29,213 nt of DNA, taken from contig JAAOMT010000239.1 of assembly GCA_016748015.1 (NCBI GenBank), positions 1 through 29,213 on the forward strand, given 5' to 3'. Of this stretch, positions 10,559-22,041 are shown in pieces. The first letter of the stretch is position 1. Each line of letters opens with the position of its first letter. Under the pieces are notes generated by a model. The model had not been told where the DNA came from. It saw only the letters and a list, made by a program, of their open reading frames with translations, and ran no database searches. A program made the translations under genes and the position numbers. Origin of the DNA: Geosiphon pyriformis uo1 (lineage: Eukaryota > Fungi > Glomeromycota).

Positions 10559-11589
10559 ATGAAATTTACGATCAAATTGCGCTCTAATTATACCACAGGC
10601 TTTACCATTTGTATTTGGTCAAATTTAATGAAACTGAATTTAAGTAAAAAGGAGGTAAGCTACTGCAAATAATCGGCATTAAATAATTAGAAAAGTTCTC
10701 TTATTTACCTATGAATAAGCTGACGGTTACTTGCCAAGAAGATCATAAAATTCCTGGCATAAGATATCGGAACTGGACTTCGGAAGAAAAACAAATGCTC
10801 ATTGAGCTACAAAAGAAACACGGTTCAAATTGGAAGCTAATTTCTCAGAAATATTTTCAATCAAGAACAATCCAAGCTCTGGAAAAAAAATTTTATAGCT
10901 TAAGCACTGGCGAAAGTATTATTGATGATAGATTAACCAGAAAGGAAAAGAAATGGACACCTAAAGAGGATAAGGAGCTGCAATTAGCTGTCAAAACATA
11001 TTCAATCCAGGGTAAAGTCAATTGGAAATCTATAATTTTAACAGGCTGTTTTCCCAAAAGAAGTGCACCAAATTTAGCGAGTCGGTATCACGGTGTTTTA
11101 GCGGGACCAAAACGTGGCCCCTGGACTAAAAATGAAGATGAACAATTGCACAATTTATTTCAGACACATGGCAGAAAATGGAAAAAAATAAGTCATATTC
11201 TTCAAAGGCCACCTAGGTATATACAATACCGTTATACCCGGTTTTTGTCACCAGGGATTAAAATTGGTCGTTGGACGCCTGAGGAATTCAAAATATTAGC
11301 TGAGAAAGCGGGAAAGCTCAATGAAAATTGGGACGAAATTCAGGAATTAATACCTGGGCGATCTTTAAATGATATTAAAACAACTTATTATAATTCCCCA
11401 AAAGTTCAAAGGAAGTTCAATAGTGGAAAATGGAATGATATAGAAATACATAACTTAAATGAAGCATTCAAAAAATTTGGTAGAAATTTTCAAAAGCTTT
11501 CCGAGGCTGTAACTACGAAAAGTCCCCGACAATGTTATCAAAGGATGCGAAACAACTTTCCAGTTAATAATATTAGAAAACAAGTTTAA
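10559..11589 (+). CDS. Five-repeat Myb/SANT protein A, ~321 aa (exons 10559-10654, 10720-11589)
   Basis: Five W(T/N)xxE-initiated Myb repeats. A 96-nt leader exon MKFTIKLRSNYTTGFTICIWSNLMKLNLSKKE ends at a GTAAGC donor; AAG acceptor at 10717-10719 is positionally equal to TAG in paralog B. Confidence 0.9.
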
Positions 11590-13389
11590 AAGACCGATAA
11601 AATATAAACTAAAATTTGTATTCAGATTTTTCTATGATGAAGATGAGATAGTGTAGGCTTATTGCGAAGGTTTCTAAATTGCAGAATTAAATTTGGGATA
11701 GAAAAGTCAAGAGATGAAAGATAAAGTAACACTTTCTAATAATCACCGAGCTTAGTTAAAACACTCATGTTTAAATAAATCTAACAGAAAAACTTAATTA
11801 AATCTTGAATTTAATGAAAAAAAAATTAAGTGAAGAACCCCCGAAATATATTGTTAGACTTGAATAAAAAATAGACAACAAAATAAATGCTGAATAATAA
11901 ATATAAATTGTATCTCTTATTTTAGAAATAAGAATAAAAAATCGAATATTAATTATTAGTTGCATTAAAGTGGTTTATTTTATCAGCGATGAATATATTA
12001 AGTTTCACATCTTATTTTGCTTACTAATTCTTAATTTAGGGTCTAAAAGTTTCAGAGTTTTTTTAAAATCGAAATTTTAAATTTTAAATAAATAAATCAG
12101 AGTAAAAGATTATGTGATGTATAATCTCGAAATTTTGAATATGTATAATTATTATTAAATTGATCTCAAAATATTATTTTAGCTTAATTTTTTTAATAAT
12201 TTTATGAAAACAGCTGTTTATTCGGTCTCTCATTAATACATATTATTTATGAGTGCAATATTTTTTTTGAAAATTTAAAAAATCTTGCAAACAAAATCTT
12301 AAAAAACAAATACCGAAAATATTTTTAAATCGGAATTTATAAAAGGATCAATTTGTTAATATAAATTGAAAATTCTTTATATTTTTTGCTTTAATATTAA
12401 TATTTGTGTTTTTATATTATAATTTTGAAATTTTCAAGTTAATTTTTTGAATACTGTTCAATACATTAATTTTTAGTCATTTTTTATAATGCAATAATTG
12501 ATAAACCCATTATTTTGTAGTTTTGCTTAGTGGATTCAAAAATTTTTTCAGATAATTTCCTTTTTGGAAAATTAAATAAAAATAATTACATAAAAAGCTT
12601 TATAATAATTATTAAGTATGTTTTAACCTCAATTTTTTCATTTGCTACTTGGATTAAACTCTTATTTCTATTTTATATGAAAAAATAATCAAAAAAAATT
12701 TATTCATCTCAGTCGTTAATAGTGTTCTACCTATAAAAATCGATGATGCCTTCAGCAACTCCTTTAAATAAATAATCGTTTACTAAAGAAATTAAATTAA
12801 AATTAATAGCCTTATACAAAAAGAAAGACTTATTGAATTATCTGTACTGAAAAGTAAATGATTTAATGCAGCTAACAATGTTAAGATTTAATATAAGTAT
12901 TATAGAAAGAAGTATCTAGTTTCAATCATTTCAAAAATTTCATTTCAAAGTATTTTTATAAAAGTATTCAAAAAATATAAATATATCTAATCAGAGTAAG
13001 ATGTGAAACTTAATATCTTCATTTGCTGATAAAAATAAGCCATATTTAATGCAATTTATAACTGGGTATTAGATTTTTTACCAAAAGGAGATGCAGTTTA
13101 TATTTATTTTTCATAATTCATTTTTTATGCTAGTCTAAAAATATATTTCAAGAGATTACTCACAAAAATATCTCGGAAAAATCCCGGACAAGCAATTATT
13201 TATCTTAGATTTATTTAGCATAGATGTTTTAACTAAGTAAGAGTTGCTTTATCTTTCATCTCTTCTATCCCAAATTTAATTCTGCAATTTAGAAACCTTC
13301 GCAATAAGCCTACACTATCTCATTTTTATCATAGAAAAATCTGAATACAAATTTTAGTTTATATTTTATCGGTCTTTTAAACTTGTTTT

Positions 13390-14401
13390 CTATAAATAAT
13401 TAACTGGAAAGTTGTTTCGCATCCTTTGATAACATTGATTAGGACTTCTCGTAGTTACAACTTCGGAAAGCTTTTGAAAATTTCCACCAAATTTTTTAAA
13501 TGCTTCATTTAAGTTATGTATTTCTATATCATTCCATTTTCCACTATTGAACTTCCTTTGAACTTTTGGGGAATTAAAATAAAGTTTTTTAATGTAATTT
13601 AAAGGTCGCCCGGGTATTAATTGCTGGATTTCTTCCCAATTTTCATTGAACTTTCTTGCTTCCTCGGCCAATATTTTGAATTCTTCAGGCGTCCAATAAC
13701 CAATCTTACTCCCTGGTGACAAAAAGTGGGTATAGTGGTATCGTATGTAGCTAGGTGGCCTTTGAAGAATATGACTCATTTTTGACCATTTTTTGCCATG
13801 TGTCTGAACTAAATTGCGCAGTTGTTCATCTTCATTTTTAGTCCATGGCCCACGTTTCGGTTCCGTTAAATAATCGTAATATCGACTTTTTAAACTTTTA
13901 ACACTCCTTTTAGGAAAACAGCCTGTTAAAAATATAGATTTCCAATCGATCCTACCATGGATCAAATTTTTTTTGATAGCCAATTGTAGCTCCTCATCCT
14001 CTTCAAGTGTCCATTTCTGCGCCTTTTTGGTTAATCTATCATCAATAATACTTTCGCCAGTGCTTAAGCTTGAAAATTTATTTTTCAGAGCTGAGATTGT
14101 TCTTGATTGAAAATATTTCTGAGAAATTAGCTTCCAATTTGAACCGTGTTTCTTTTGTAGCTCAATGAGCATTTGTTTTTCTTCCGAAGTCCAGTATCTT
14201 AGCCCAGAAATTTTATGACCACCTTGGCTAGTAACCACCAGCTAATTCATAGGTGAATAAGAAAACTTTCTATTTATTGAATGCGGATTATTTGCAGTAG
14301 CTTACCTCCTTTTTACTTAAATTCAGTTTCATTAAATTTGACCAAACACAAATTGTAAAACCTATGGTATAATTTGAATGCAATTTGATCGTGACTTTCA
14401 T
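13390..14401 (-). CDS. Five-repeat Myb/SANT protein B, ~315 aa (exons 14401-14306, 14241-13390)
   Basis: Close paralog of A. Leader exon MKVTIKLHSNYTIGFTICVWSNLMKLNLSKKE; GTAAGC...TAG intron 14305-14242. Confidence 0.9.
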
Positions 14402-14446
14402 TGTAATAAATGAGTGATAAACAGATGTTTTGGTTGCAAAATTCTT

Positions 14447-14476
14447 TATTTATATAGATGATCAACGTGTCGATCA
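14447..14476 (-). promoter_or_regulatory. Palindrome plus TATA box upstream of Myb gene B
   Basis: Minus strand TGATCGACACGTTGATCATCTATATAAATA, homologous to the gene A promoter. Confidence 0.6.
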
Positions 14477-17120
14477 AGTTAGGAAGATCAGAAAAGGCTA
14501 CTAAACTGGGTGTTGTGATCAAATAAAAAAAATCATTTAATTAAAAGAACTTAATTTATGTTCTTGTAATTAGATACAATGATATTAATATTTTGAATTA
14601 AAATTTTCAAATTTTCAATATGAATCAAAAACAGATTTTCTATTTAGAAAATAAATAATCTGCTCAGAAAAATTTCTTGCTGCCGCAAAGAGACTAGCAA
14701 CTAAAACCATCTCTAAGTCTCATTTTTGTACATTTTAGAGATGCCTTTTGAATTAATTTTTTTTTCGCTCATTAATCTTATTTATACTAAGGCAAGAAAT
14801 AAATCAGAACAATAATTAAATTTATTATTATTAGGACTTTTTATAACTAACGAACCATTTTTCGACATAGAAATTTATTTATGAATGTGGATTAGAATAC
14901 TTTGGGTTTTTCTTAAAGACAACTCTGGAGCTAGTTTCAATTTGAACTTGAATGACATCGGCTAGTAATCGTGTTTAGAGAAATTTCAGGGGCGATAAAT
15001 ATAATAATTTTGTGCAAAGCTTTAACTAGATTAGTTTATTTCGGAAGTAATCAAAATAAAATTTTTCATATTCTATTTTGAGAAACAGTAATACGCAATA
15101 AAAAATTTTGCAAATTATTTAGTTTATTATATCTTGAAAATGATTGTTATAACCCATTTATATTGAAAAATTATTAAAAAATGGCAAACTACTATCAAAA
15201 ATTTTTCAATTCTATTTATCATAATAAATAAAAAATGGTAATAAACACAAATTGATAAACAATTCAAAATAGAACTCATTTGAAGAGATTCTAATTTACT
15301 AAAAAAAACTTGATTTATAAATAAACAGCTAAAATTTTCAAGTTAAGTCTTATATACATACAACTTTTAGATTTGTAAAATGAATTTTTATTCTCTTTAA
15401 ATATCGTTAATATTAAAATTTTTCCCAAGATTGTATTTTTATATAAAATATGTTTTAAATAAAATCAAAACGGGTCTTTTTTCTAATCATTATTTATGCA
15501 AATGTATATTGATTTGACACCAAAGTTATTGATAATAAAGTTACCGGTTACGTTAAATTACACAATTCATATGTGTATTATAAAAAATTCGAATTCAGAT
15601 GCAGTTTTTATTTATAAGTATAAAACGAGTTTATAACATTTAAAAGAAAGACTAATTATATAAAGAAATTTTAAAATAGGCTTAAGTGGTTGGGAAGACT
15701 TTTAAACTCAAAGAAATCAAATATATGTTACTAAAAACAATTTCTTATAATTTATCTTTTCGAAAATTCCAAATTTAATTTTGATAAAATGAATTTTTTC
15801 TTTATTAATTTTTAGAAGTAATTATATAATGAAATTAATAAAAGTGAATTTAAAAAGTAAAATGCTTAAGATATTTTTCATCAATGGGTTTGCTTATAAT
15901 ACTCTAATTTAAATTTTTATTCGCACAAATTTATAATATAAAAAAAAGTTCTGGATACACTTTTTCTTGAATAAAAAAAAGTTAAATACAATAATTTTCT
16001 TAGAATATTTGCAAAAATCCCTTTTTTTAAACATATGAAATATTTTATTGAAACCAAAATCTTATTAAAATATATGAAGAGAAAATATCTTGATGTTTTA
16101 TCTAAAGTAAATTTAGGCTCACTAATTTATTATTATCTAGAGACGTATCAATTCAAAAAAATTCACTTTTTATAGCTTCACTTTACTGAATGGGTCTTAA
16201 TATTTTGAGCATTTTTCTCTTAACTAGTTTGAATCATTCACTCTTGCTCAAGAAAACAAAAAATTAAAAACAAATATTCTTTTTCATAATAATTTCATTC
16301 CTAGTATCCGTAAAGAGAAAATTATCAATAGTAGTTATCCTCATTAGAATTAAATAAGATTTAATGAAAAAATACTTTGATATCTCAAATAACATACATA
16401 ATTGTATTATATGACGCAGAGTGTAAATTAAGAAAAATTGGGTTGAAACTTTTGAAAGTATCATTAAAATGAGAATCTATTTATTAATGTTTTTGATTTC
16501 GAAATTTTGTTTTCAACCAAATTTTTGAAATAAACTGCTTGATAAATATATATTGCAATTCCAATATGATTGAAGTTTCTGATTTAAAAGAACTATTTTT
16601 CAAAACATATTGCTTATTAACAATTTTTAAATTAAAGGGCTAGTTAAAAATATTTACATCTATTTAATGATACTTGATGGAATTTAATAGAATATGTACA
16701 AAAATTTGGCACTTTATATTACTTGATATCAATGAAATCTCAAGTAAGATTAACATATAATTTTTAGAAAATTGAATCTTATATTTTTAAATTTGATAGT
16801 AAAATAAACACATTAGTTAAAGAAAAGCAATATATGATATTTTTTATTCTAAATTAATGTTAGTGATATTGTAAAAATTAATATTTAAGAATAATATAAT
16901 TTAAGAACTTTATTTGCTGATCATTGCAAATCTAAAATATTTTACAATTTATTGTTATTTACTTTCAAGTTTGATATTTATTTAATTAGAAAAATAATAG
17001 TTAATTAAGAAAATATCTAAAATAGCAAATAGTTTTAAGTAAATTTCGGTCAAATTATTTTTTTCATAAATTTTTATTTAATAGGTATTTTTATTGAGGT
17101 TGGATATTTTAACTTTATTT

Positions 17121-21164: not shown

Positions 21165-22041
21165 ATGTTAAAACCGCAAACTAGTAATACAATAGGTCTC
21201 GCCCTTTGCATATGGTTGACTTTAAGGAGATTAAAGTAAGCTGCTACAAATTTTAACCAATTTTGAATTTTATCTAATTTTAATCTTTACTATTAGCCGG
21301 CAATTCCCCGAAATACTAGGAAATACAAACAATACTTTATCAAACGTTTATGAAATTTCTTCCCCAAAATATTCTCCAAGATGGAGCCTTGAAGAAAGTA
21401 AAGCTCTTCTTGAGGCATATAAAGTTTTCGGCTCAAAATGGAAATTAATTTCACAAAATCACTTTCCATTAAGAACAGCTAAATCTCTCGAATGTAAATG
21501 GTATGACTTAAAAGCTAATGGAGAAATTATTAATCAGAAACATACCCAAAATTCAAAAAAGTGGACGCCGGAAGAGGATAAAGAGCTGTACATAGCTGTT
21601 ATACCGTATTCATTGAATAAGAGAGTTGATTGGAAAGCTATTTTATTAAATGCCCGTTTTCCTGGAAAAAATACTTTACAGTTATCCAAACGTTATCACG
21701 GTGTTTTAGCTCAACCAAAACGTGGTCCATGGACCAAGCAAGAAGATGAAAAACTTTTGAGTTTAGTGCAGAGCCATGGAAACAAATGGATAAAAATAAG
21801 TCATCACCTTCAAAGGCCCACTTGTTCAATTAGATTACGTTACTCTAACTACTTGGCACCTGGGATTAAAAGGAGTCAATGGACAGACGAAGAGTTTCAT
21901 CAATTAGCTAAGGCTTTTCAAGATCATGGTGAGAATTGGGAACAGATACAGCGATTACTCCCAGGAAGATCCTTAGATCGTATAAGATACTATTGTCGTC
22001 ATCCACCCAAAATTCAAATAAGGGGAAATGTGACCCAATAG
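21165..22041 (+). CDS. Four-repeat Myb/SANT protein C, ~271 aa (exons 21165-21235, 21297-22041); fifth repeat lost by frameshift
   Basis: The frame is open upstream of ORF 21613 back to 21298, encoding RWSLEESKALL..KWKLISQNHFPLRT and KWTPEEDKEL. Leader exon MLKPQTSNTIGLALCIWLTLRRL; GTAAGC...TAG intron 21236-21296; TATAAATA at 21123-21130. Confidence 0.85.

Follow-up and report, generated by a model that had tools for sequence, protein, structure and literature searches.

A Myb-repeat gene family of Geosiphon pyriformis with probable diversification of base-contact residues and shuffling of modules by gene conversion

The window analysed here consists of the first 29,213 nucleotides (nt) of the 764-kb contig JAAOMT010000239.1 (C788:1-29213 of a 128-Mb assembly) of the glomeromycotan fungus Geosiphon pyriformis uo1. 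Two of its stretches, 566-1357 and about 1800-2500, read as masked N in every frame. It holds two convergent genes for five-repeat Myb proteins, gene A on the forward strand and gene B on the reverse strand, and a more distant paralog, gene C (Table 1). I found that, in A, B and their close paralogs, the residues equivalent to the base readers of c-Myb are replaced faster than silent sites, while the rest of the protein is constrained. It was also revealed that gene B is a mosaic, the core of which resembles a paralog on another contig, at C507:71976-72800 (hereafter, the C507 paralog). Probably, A and B are members of a birth-and-death Myb family of the Geosiphon lineage, in which the base-contact residues diversify and gene conversion shuffles the modules. 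An initial annotation of the window had proposed a diversifying, modular system of nucleic-acid recognition, and this general idea appears to be well supported by sequence evolution. On the other hand, its picture of A and B as simple recent duplicates diverging in the third helix (helix 3) of each repeat has to be given up because of the mosaic nature of B.

Selection at predicted base-contact positions

The base-reading residues of c-Myb are K128, E132, N136, N179, K182, N183, N186, and S187 (PMC3203581). These contacts were transferred to the Geosiphon repeats by ungapped alignment, the same one that a profile search also yields. The resulting contact set has 23 positions, at offsets -6, -3, -2, +1, and +2 from the aromatic residue of helix 3, and was fixed beforehand as the exact published c-Myb list. 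Codon models (GY94/F3x4) were fitted with my own likelihood code to 10 paralogs and 277 codons, using five segment trees, one per repeat, with branch lengths fitted under one ratio of nonsynonymous to synonymous rates (dN/dS, omega).

A single omega for the whole gene was 0.59. When the contact positions, the other helix-3 residues, and the rest of the protein had their own omega with a shared dS, the values were 2.6, 0.89, and 0.47, respectively, and twice the log-likelihood difference (2dlnL) over one omega was 136. With a class-specific synonymous scale, fitted by grid search, the omega of the contact positions was 3.96 and omega = 1 was rejected (2dlnL = 16.5, p = 5e-5), while the rest of the protein had an omega of 0.54, which is below 1 at p = 8e-9. 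The scaffold of these Myb proteins is under purifying selection. In models without prior classes, M2a was favored over M1a (2dlnL 55). The comparison of M7 with M8, which the initial annotation had suggested as a check, favored M8 (2dlnL 72), as did that with M8a (53), and M8 placed 17% of the sites at omega 3.3. Half of the 24 sites with an M8 posterior above 0.9 lie within the 23 contact positions, and the 13 sites selected by M2a fall in the contact set more often than expected by chance (Fisher p = 2e-4).

When the contact set was slid along the helix, omega was highest at shift 0 and formed side peaks with the period of the helix. The buried helix-3 positions (offsets -12, -8, -4, and 0) have an omega of 0.09-0.38. 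The omega values above 1 (2.6-4) fall on the predicted base-contact positions of helix 3 with a peak at the c-Myb register, as had been anticipated. Counts that need no tree point in the same direction. At the contact sites, the proportion of nonsynonymous differences (pN, 0.34) exceeds that of synonymous differences (pS, 0.23), as it does in 39 of the 45 pairs, while elsewhere pN is 0.084 and pS is 0.196. Since pS is similar inside and outside the contact set, the excess at the contact sites lies in the replacements and not in the mutation rate. The claim of positive selection on helix 3 is therefore supported for the family. It is not supported for the A/B pair in itself, where the pattern is that of a conversion breakpoint, as described below.

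Gene B as a gene-conversion mosaic

A repeat search revealed an inverted duplication with arms of ~1.5 kb (~10456-12023 versus 12988-14492), the identity of which is 89% in the coding arms, 94% in the 3′ flank, and 91% in the 5′ flank. The similarity to paralogs other than A and B is lost at the stop codon. Codon by codon, A and B differ in 83 codons, 61 of which change the amino acid. The sequence observations made in the initial annotation for this pair were confirmed. Around helix 3 of repeat 1 (R1), there is no difference over 108 nt before and 43 nt after the helix, and the six nucleotide differences inside it are all replacements in four codons (Q52S, E55K, K56N, and Y59S). The helix-3 differences listed for R2 to R5 are all present in the comparison, and the stop codon and 3′ flank are nearly identical, apart from two substitutions and an indel of 1 nt at the stop. 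The statement that the two genes differ mainly in their recognition helices goes too far. Up to residue 279, and with helix 3 taken from DSSP on an AlphaFold2 model (residues 51-62, 116-127, 165-176, 216-225, and 269-279 of gene A), 20 of the 59 replacements lie in the 57 residues of the third helices, while the other 39 are spread over 222 residues. The helices have double the replacement density of the remainder, and differences are seen at 15 of the 23 contact positions, but most replacements lie outside the helices.

The reason for the sharp contrast in R1 became clear from a codon alignment of the nine intact close paralogs, which are 73-78% identical in protein sequence. In sliding windows, the identity of gene B to A is 99% in codons 16-45. 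Between about codons 46 and 225, it is the C507 paralog that B matches, at 96-100%, and A is again the closest sequence from codon 226 on, the 3′ flank included. The informative sites of the triplet of A, B, and the C507 paralog fall into blocks: A-like at nt 54-153, C507-like at nt 154-753 with an A-like patch at nt 476-500, and A-like from nt 754. In codons, B is A-like at 18-51, C507-like at 52-251 (with the patch at 159-166), and A-like from 252 to the end. The order of these sites has 14 runs where 40 are expected, which was reached in none of 20,000 shuffles. In the core, B and the C507 paralog differ at 21 of 600 nt (three silent and 18 replacement differences; pS 0.02), and B and A have no difference over codons 17-51. 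The left breakpoint, codon 52, is the first variable residue of the R1 helix 3. Thus, the identical flanks and changed helix of R1 mark the edge of a converted tract. Judging from these alignments, the sharp switch marks where recombination took place between two alleles of that helix, both of older origin, and the core of gene B came from, or was given to, the C507 paralog. In R1, R2, and R4, B and the C507 paralog have the same helices or very nearly so; on this comparison, the B helices are of the C507 type and not new substitutions.

Is this exchange limited to gene B? The trees of single repeats conflict with each other. For example, the paralog at C507:88k groups with that at C520:40k in repeat 3 (89%) and with those at C507:76k/93k in repeat 1 (82-83%). 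The same helix-3 peptides also reappear in otherwise different paralogs. From these two observations, the swapping of repeat-sized modules looks general in the Geosiphon family. In the four-gamete test, 48% of the informative site pairs failed.

Proposed mechanism and alternatives

In the preferred reading, each protein consists of five Myb repeats with no more than a short basic leader in front of them. Most likely, it would bind an extended nucleic-acid site with the third helix of each repeat in the major groove. Purifying selection keeps the scaffold, while the equivalents of the c-Myb base readers are replaced faster than silent sites, which suggests that the paralogs have been selected to differ in what they read. 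Gene conversion between paralogs moves whole repeats or recognition helices and would so bring already tested helices into new combinations. Gene B is one such product, its ends matching the inverted neighbor A and its core matching the C507 paralog. A changing nucleic-acid target is the usual cause of such a pattern of diversification. By analogy, the pressure for new specificities may come from a target of this kind, such as mobile or selfish DNA. A target in an organelle would fit the leader as well.

Some points weigh against this reading. The alignment had been looked at before the contact set was fixed, even though the set is the exact published list. The codon models are home-made, the branch lengths were fixed up to a scale factor, and kappa was fixed in some of the fits. 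Recombination within a segment lies outside the models and can inflate site-model tests. The tree-free pN/pS of the contact sites, 1.46, is a descriptive value. In a second subfamily (ten genes, mainly of the C669 cluster), omega was 1.65 at the contact sites versus 0.37 elsewhere, and the former is not significantly above 1 (p = 0.27). A PHI-like test of neighbor incompatibility for family-wide recombination was borderline (p = 0.06), probably because the incompatibility is already saturated. The binding of DNA, rather than of RNA or protein, is argued from homology. No RNA evidence was found for A or B; the sole public run with the region is a set of contigs of low depth, probably from DNA, that covers gene A at 10906-11357 only and has no joints.

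How do other explanations compare? A and B may have arisen by a recent local inverted duplication, after which selected point substitutions accumulated mostly in the recognition helices of both copies. Their flanks are shared with no other paralog, the 3′ flanks are as similar as noted above, and the high share of differing contact positions in comparison with the residues outside helix 3 would fit as well. However, since the C507 paralog has matching R1, R2, and R4 helices, those of B are not the product of new substitutions in this gene; moreover, the informative sites switch in blocks, and the divergence of the A-like and C507-like parts of B is unequal (0%, ~3.5%, and 3-9%). For these three repeats, the idea is largely refuted, and on the whole I consider it very unlikely. 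Relaxed constraint, with helix 3 drifting in redundant or decaying copies, is scarcely credible. About 40% of the family loci have stops or frameshifts, the pairwise whole-gene dN/dS is high (0.36-0.84), and no expression data were found, but drift cannot lift omega above 1 as is seen at the contact sites, nor would it leave the scaffold significantly below 1 and the buried helix-3 positions conserved. Furthermore, all nine full-length close copies have intact open frames and splice signals.

Site-model likelihood-ratio tests are sensitive to recombination, and this family appears to recombine heavily, to judge from the four-gamete failures and the conflicting segment trees. It might be argued that the omega values above 1 arise from trees imposed on such a family, where exchanged segments mimic convergent replacements. 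I give little weight to this argument: each repeat had its own tree, the tree-free counts agree with similar pS inside and outside the contact set, and neither helical periodicity nor the published contact register is expected from recombination. Finally, the variable face of helix 3 could contact proteins or RNA instead of DNA, as in SANT-like or Cdc5-like uses of the Myb fold. Pfam gives weaker SANT_DAMP1_like matches as well, and the Myb repeats of the spliceosomal Cdc5/CEF1 are also among the PDB matches. This seems unlikely in view of the best matches, which are DNA-bound c-Myb and SNAPC4, the isoelectric point (pI) of about 10, and the coincidence of the variable positions with the c-Myb base-reading residues.

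If the paralogs truly read different sequences, they would form a natural set of five-repeat Myb proteins whose differences lie mostly at contact positions and from which a Myb recognition code could be derived. The family would then also point to a genetic conflict within a fungal host of an endosymbiotic cyanobacterium, and be a clear case of gene conversion as a shuffler of modules and not a homogenizer. What this window newly contributes is the A/B contrast as a conversion breakpoint and the apparent shuffling of modules between arrays on different contigs. As a lesson, identical flanks around a changed helix in neighboring paralogs can mean a conversion breakpoint and not substitution in place. 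In a literature search, selection-driven change of base readers was not found described for Myb repeats or for early-diverging fungi.

Relation to known Myb arrays

The exon 2 proteins were used as queries in database and fold searches. Pfam PF00249 matches five stretches in each protein, with 136 bits for A (E 3.7e-40) and 155 bits for B, where the cut-off is 24.4. The AlphaFold2 model of gene A has a mean confidence score (pLDDT) of 79 and three helices per repeat. Both proteins thus belong to the Myb/SANT group, and the view of A and B as an inverted pair of intact five-repeat Myb genes was confirmed. Their pI is 9.8-10.0.

The best full-length match in both sequence and structure, and the closest solved array, is human SNAPC4 (SNAP190) of the snRNA-activating protein complex (SNAPc). 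Its four and a half to five Myb repeats (Rh-Ra-Rb-Rc-Rd) are collinear with the Geosiphon array, have similar linkers, and run along promoter DNA. A family profile is collinear with SNAPC4 over positions 34-272 (E 1.4e-21), and in the PDB match, residues 36-276 of the query align to residues 278-512 of SNAPC4 in one collinear alignment. The first-ranked Foldseek match is SNAPC4 in the mini-SNAPc complex with PSE (promoter element) DNA (7xur_A; 283 columns). However, the Geosiphon proteins are only ~320 amino acids (aa) in length, with a 32-aa leader, the repeats, and fewer than 15 residues after them. Neither the long N-terminal part of SNAPC4, through which the other SNAPc subunits are bound, nor its long C-terminal part has a counterpart in them. 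Moreover, SNAPC4 is one conserved gene per genome, while the Geosiphon family has dozens of diverging copies. The collinear array of a SNAPC4 orthologue is therefore there, without its long terminal regions and its status as a single conserved gene. Homologues of SNAPC3 and SNAPC1 are found elsewhere in the genome (L051-L053; C610:254373-255233 and C773:1051177-1051299), which makes it probable that the genome has a canonical SNAPc complex in addition to the expanded Myb family. A canonical Geosiphon SNAPC4 gene was not identified; two longer Myb open frames (L044 and L045) match c-Myb and SNAPC4 about equally.

The profile also matches c-Myb R1R2R3 (E 8.6e-26). Repeats 2-4 correspond to R1-R3, and the hydrophobic core and the helix-3 register are kept, as in 3R-Myb proteins in general. 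In contrast to c-Myb, the Geosiphon proteins have two extra repeats and no transactivation or regulatory domains, and the equivalents of the eight c-Myb base readers, which are conserved in c-Myb orthologues, are hypervariable among the paralogs. Therefore, the exactly three repeats, conserved base readers, and further domains of c-Myb, A-Myb, and B-Myb are not found in this family.

Expansion in the Geosiphon lineage

At least 83 genome matches to gene A were found, clustered on contigs C507, C520, C310, C669, and C596, and many of them have stops. The family has at least 50 loci, in clusters. An exhaustive profile-free search gave 33 representatives with E below 1e-30. Homologues spanning all five repeats with 30-37% identity exist in Ambispora, Diversispora, Acaulospora, Rhizophagus, Funneliformis, Paraglomus, and Entrophospora; those of Rhizophagus have been automatically named "Bas1p" or "myb-like protein L". 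A maximum-likelihood tree was made from the 28 intact Geosiphon copies and homologues from nine other Glomeromycota genera. In it, a branch supported at 100/99 sets all 28 copies apart as one clade, indicating that the expansion occurred in the Geosiphon lineage. In a literature search, no paper turned up on this five-repeat family, on an expansion of Myb genes within Geosiphon or the Glomeromycota, or on Myb proteins of mitochondria; the Geosiphon genome paper was not covered by it.

A transposon origin of the copies was considered and ruled out. The paralogs share homology only in the gene itself and in ~270 nt ahead of it, neither terminal repeats nor a transposase could be seen, and the neighboring genes are ordinary. 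In the window, such neighbors are open-frame pieces of a class-3 lipase gene (3609-4019) and of a cytochrome P450 gene (26001-26591), with no transposase seen near the Myb genes.

Gene structure and the leader exon

Gene models were built from both strands of the window and the upstream regions of the nine close paralogs (Table 1). The long open frames are convergent, at 10711-11589 (+; 292 codons) and 13390-14238 (-; 282 codons), and each is preceded by a short exon. The limits of the initial annotation, 10559 and 14401, are the exon-1 ATGs of A and B. The close paralogs keep the same structure, with a 96-nt exon 1, a GTAAGC donor, an intron of 64-65 nt, and an acceptor abutting the long exon 2. 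The acceptor is the TAG of ATGAATTAG in all of them but A. Thus, the TAG after ATGAAT in gene B, which resembles a premature stop at codon 3, is a splice acceptor and not a lesion. Gene A alone has AAG in place of the TAG acceptor. This also makes an alternative ATG available at 10711, and for this reason, the deposited model of gene A starts there. The deposited model of gene B (P0003) uses an inner ATG of exon 1 as its start and has the same intron as the present model. The counterpart of exon 1 of gene A is also used by the deposited models of two paralogs (P0004 and P0008). Codon 2 of exon 2 is an ATG in most paralogs, but it is ACG in A and GTG in B.

Table 1. Features of the three Myb genes in the window
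Feature	Position	Strand	Description
Gene A exon 1	10559..10654	+	32 codons; basic, acid-poor leader peptide; ends AAG GAG before the GTAAGC donor
Gene A intron	10655..10719	+	65 nt; GTAAGC...AAG
Gene A exon 2	10720..11589	+	Five Myb repeats; 289 aa plus stop; Pfam, AlphaFold2, and PDB matches
Gene A 3′ flank	11590..12023	+	Common only to A and B; the inverted-repeat arm runs past the stop
Gene B exon 1	14306..14401	-	32 codons; leader peptide
Gene B intron	14242..14305	-	64 nt; GTAAGC...TAG
Gene B exon 2	13390..14241	-	Five Myb repeats; 283 aa plus stop; mosaic
Gene B 3′ flank	12988..13389	-	Counterpart of the gene A 3′ flank
Gene C	21165..22041	+	Four-repeat paralog of another subfamily; exon 1 21165-21235 (phase 2), intron 21236-21296, exon 2 21297-22041

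Among the close paralogs, exon 1 is not better conserved than the intron (89.6% versus 89.7%). It is argued to be coding because the distant gene C retains an in-frame exon 1 with a similar peptide despite another length and phase. The initial annotation saw no obvious effector domain. This is correct in that there are five Myb repeats and no further domains, although a conserved basic, acid-poor leader exon precedes them. The gene A leader has no acidic and five basic residues among its first 30, and the first 30 residues have 3-7 K/R and at most one D/E in 15 of 17 N-termini of the family, those from other genera included. Over 20-58 residues, the leaders of P0017, P0018, P0020, P0025, P0046, P0068, P0075, and P0078, from the family and its homologues in other Glomeromycota, as well as that encoded by 10559-10654 of the window, have a basic composition with much Ser/Thr and hardly any acidic residues. 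This composition is compatible with an organellar presequence and may serve as a lead.

Selection-driven rapid change of base-reading residues is well known in the zinc-finger arrays of animals and the pentatricopeptide repeat (PPR) arrays of plants. The KRAB zinc-finger clusters of animals are tandem DNA-reader arrays with positive selection at base-contact residues. The Geosiphon family resembles such diversifying tandem readers in having omega above 1 at contact positions, a clustered lineage-specific expansion, and turnover through pseudogenes. The likeness to KRAB zinc-finger clusters extends to birth-and-death evolution, to the exchange of modules between paralogs, and to the confinement of omega above 1 to the base-contact positions of a repeated DNA-binding module. 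In contrast, the Geosiphon family is fungal, is built of three-helix Myb repeats and not C2H2 fingers, has a fixed number of five (or four) repeats, and has neither a repressor domain such as KRAB nor a known class of targets. PPR motifs read RNA in organelles. The restorer-of-fertility-like PPR genes of plants are also clustered, recombining, and fast-evolving readers made of helical repeats, selected at target-specifying residues and equipped with a basic N-terminal leader. They differ in that their targeting is demonstrated, while for the Myb fold of Geosiphon it is a lead from composition. One may go further and imagine the family as a Myb-built fungal counterpart of restorer-like PPR or KRAB zinc-finger proteins. 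The leader-bearing sequence-specific readers would be sent to the mitochondrion or to the symbiosome that contains Nostoc, would there be locked in an arms race against DNA of selfish or foreign origin, and would gain specificities through residue replacement and conversion of modules. In this full form, the idea is doubtful.

Gene C and irregular copies

Gene C is 49% identical to A. It had been counted among the five-repeat genes, but four repeats were found. It ends after repeat 4, like two other paralogs (L022 and L028), and has kept the leader exon and the intron, with a 71-nt exon 1 in another phase. The deposited 506-aa model G9A89_003956 (L003/P0001, C507:88652-91682) is an A-like five-repeat gene fused with the next C-like four-repeat gene. 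The arrangement of an A-like gene with a C-like gene ~2.3 kb downstream is found again at C507:76-80k.

Some copies have an irregular exon 1. The C507 paralog (L006) and the one at C507:100873-101721 (L005) have a TAA at codon 2 of exon 1 and an in-frame ATG at codon 4. L005 has an additional 1-nt deletion at the end of exon 1, so that it must either start inside exon 2 or be broken. Contig C310, 22.7 kb in length, has nearly identical partial gene copies at both ends in opposite orientation (L012, C310:20660-22746; L013, C310:1-2033), which points either to an inverted duplication of recent date or to an artefact of the assembly.

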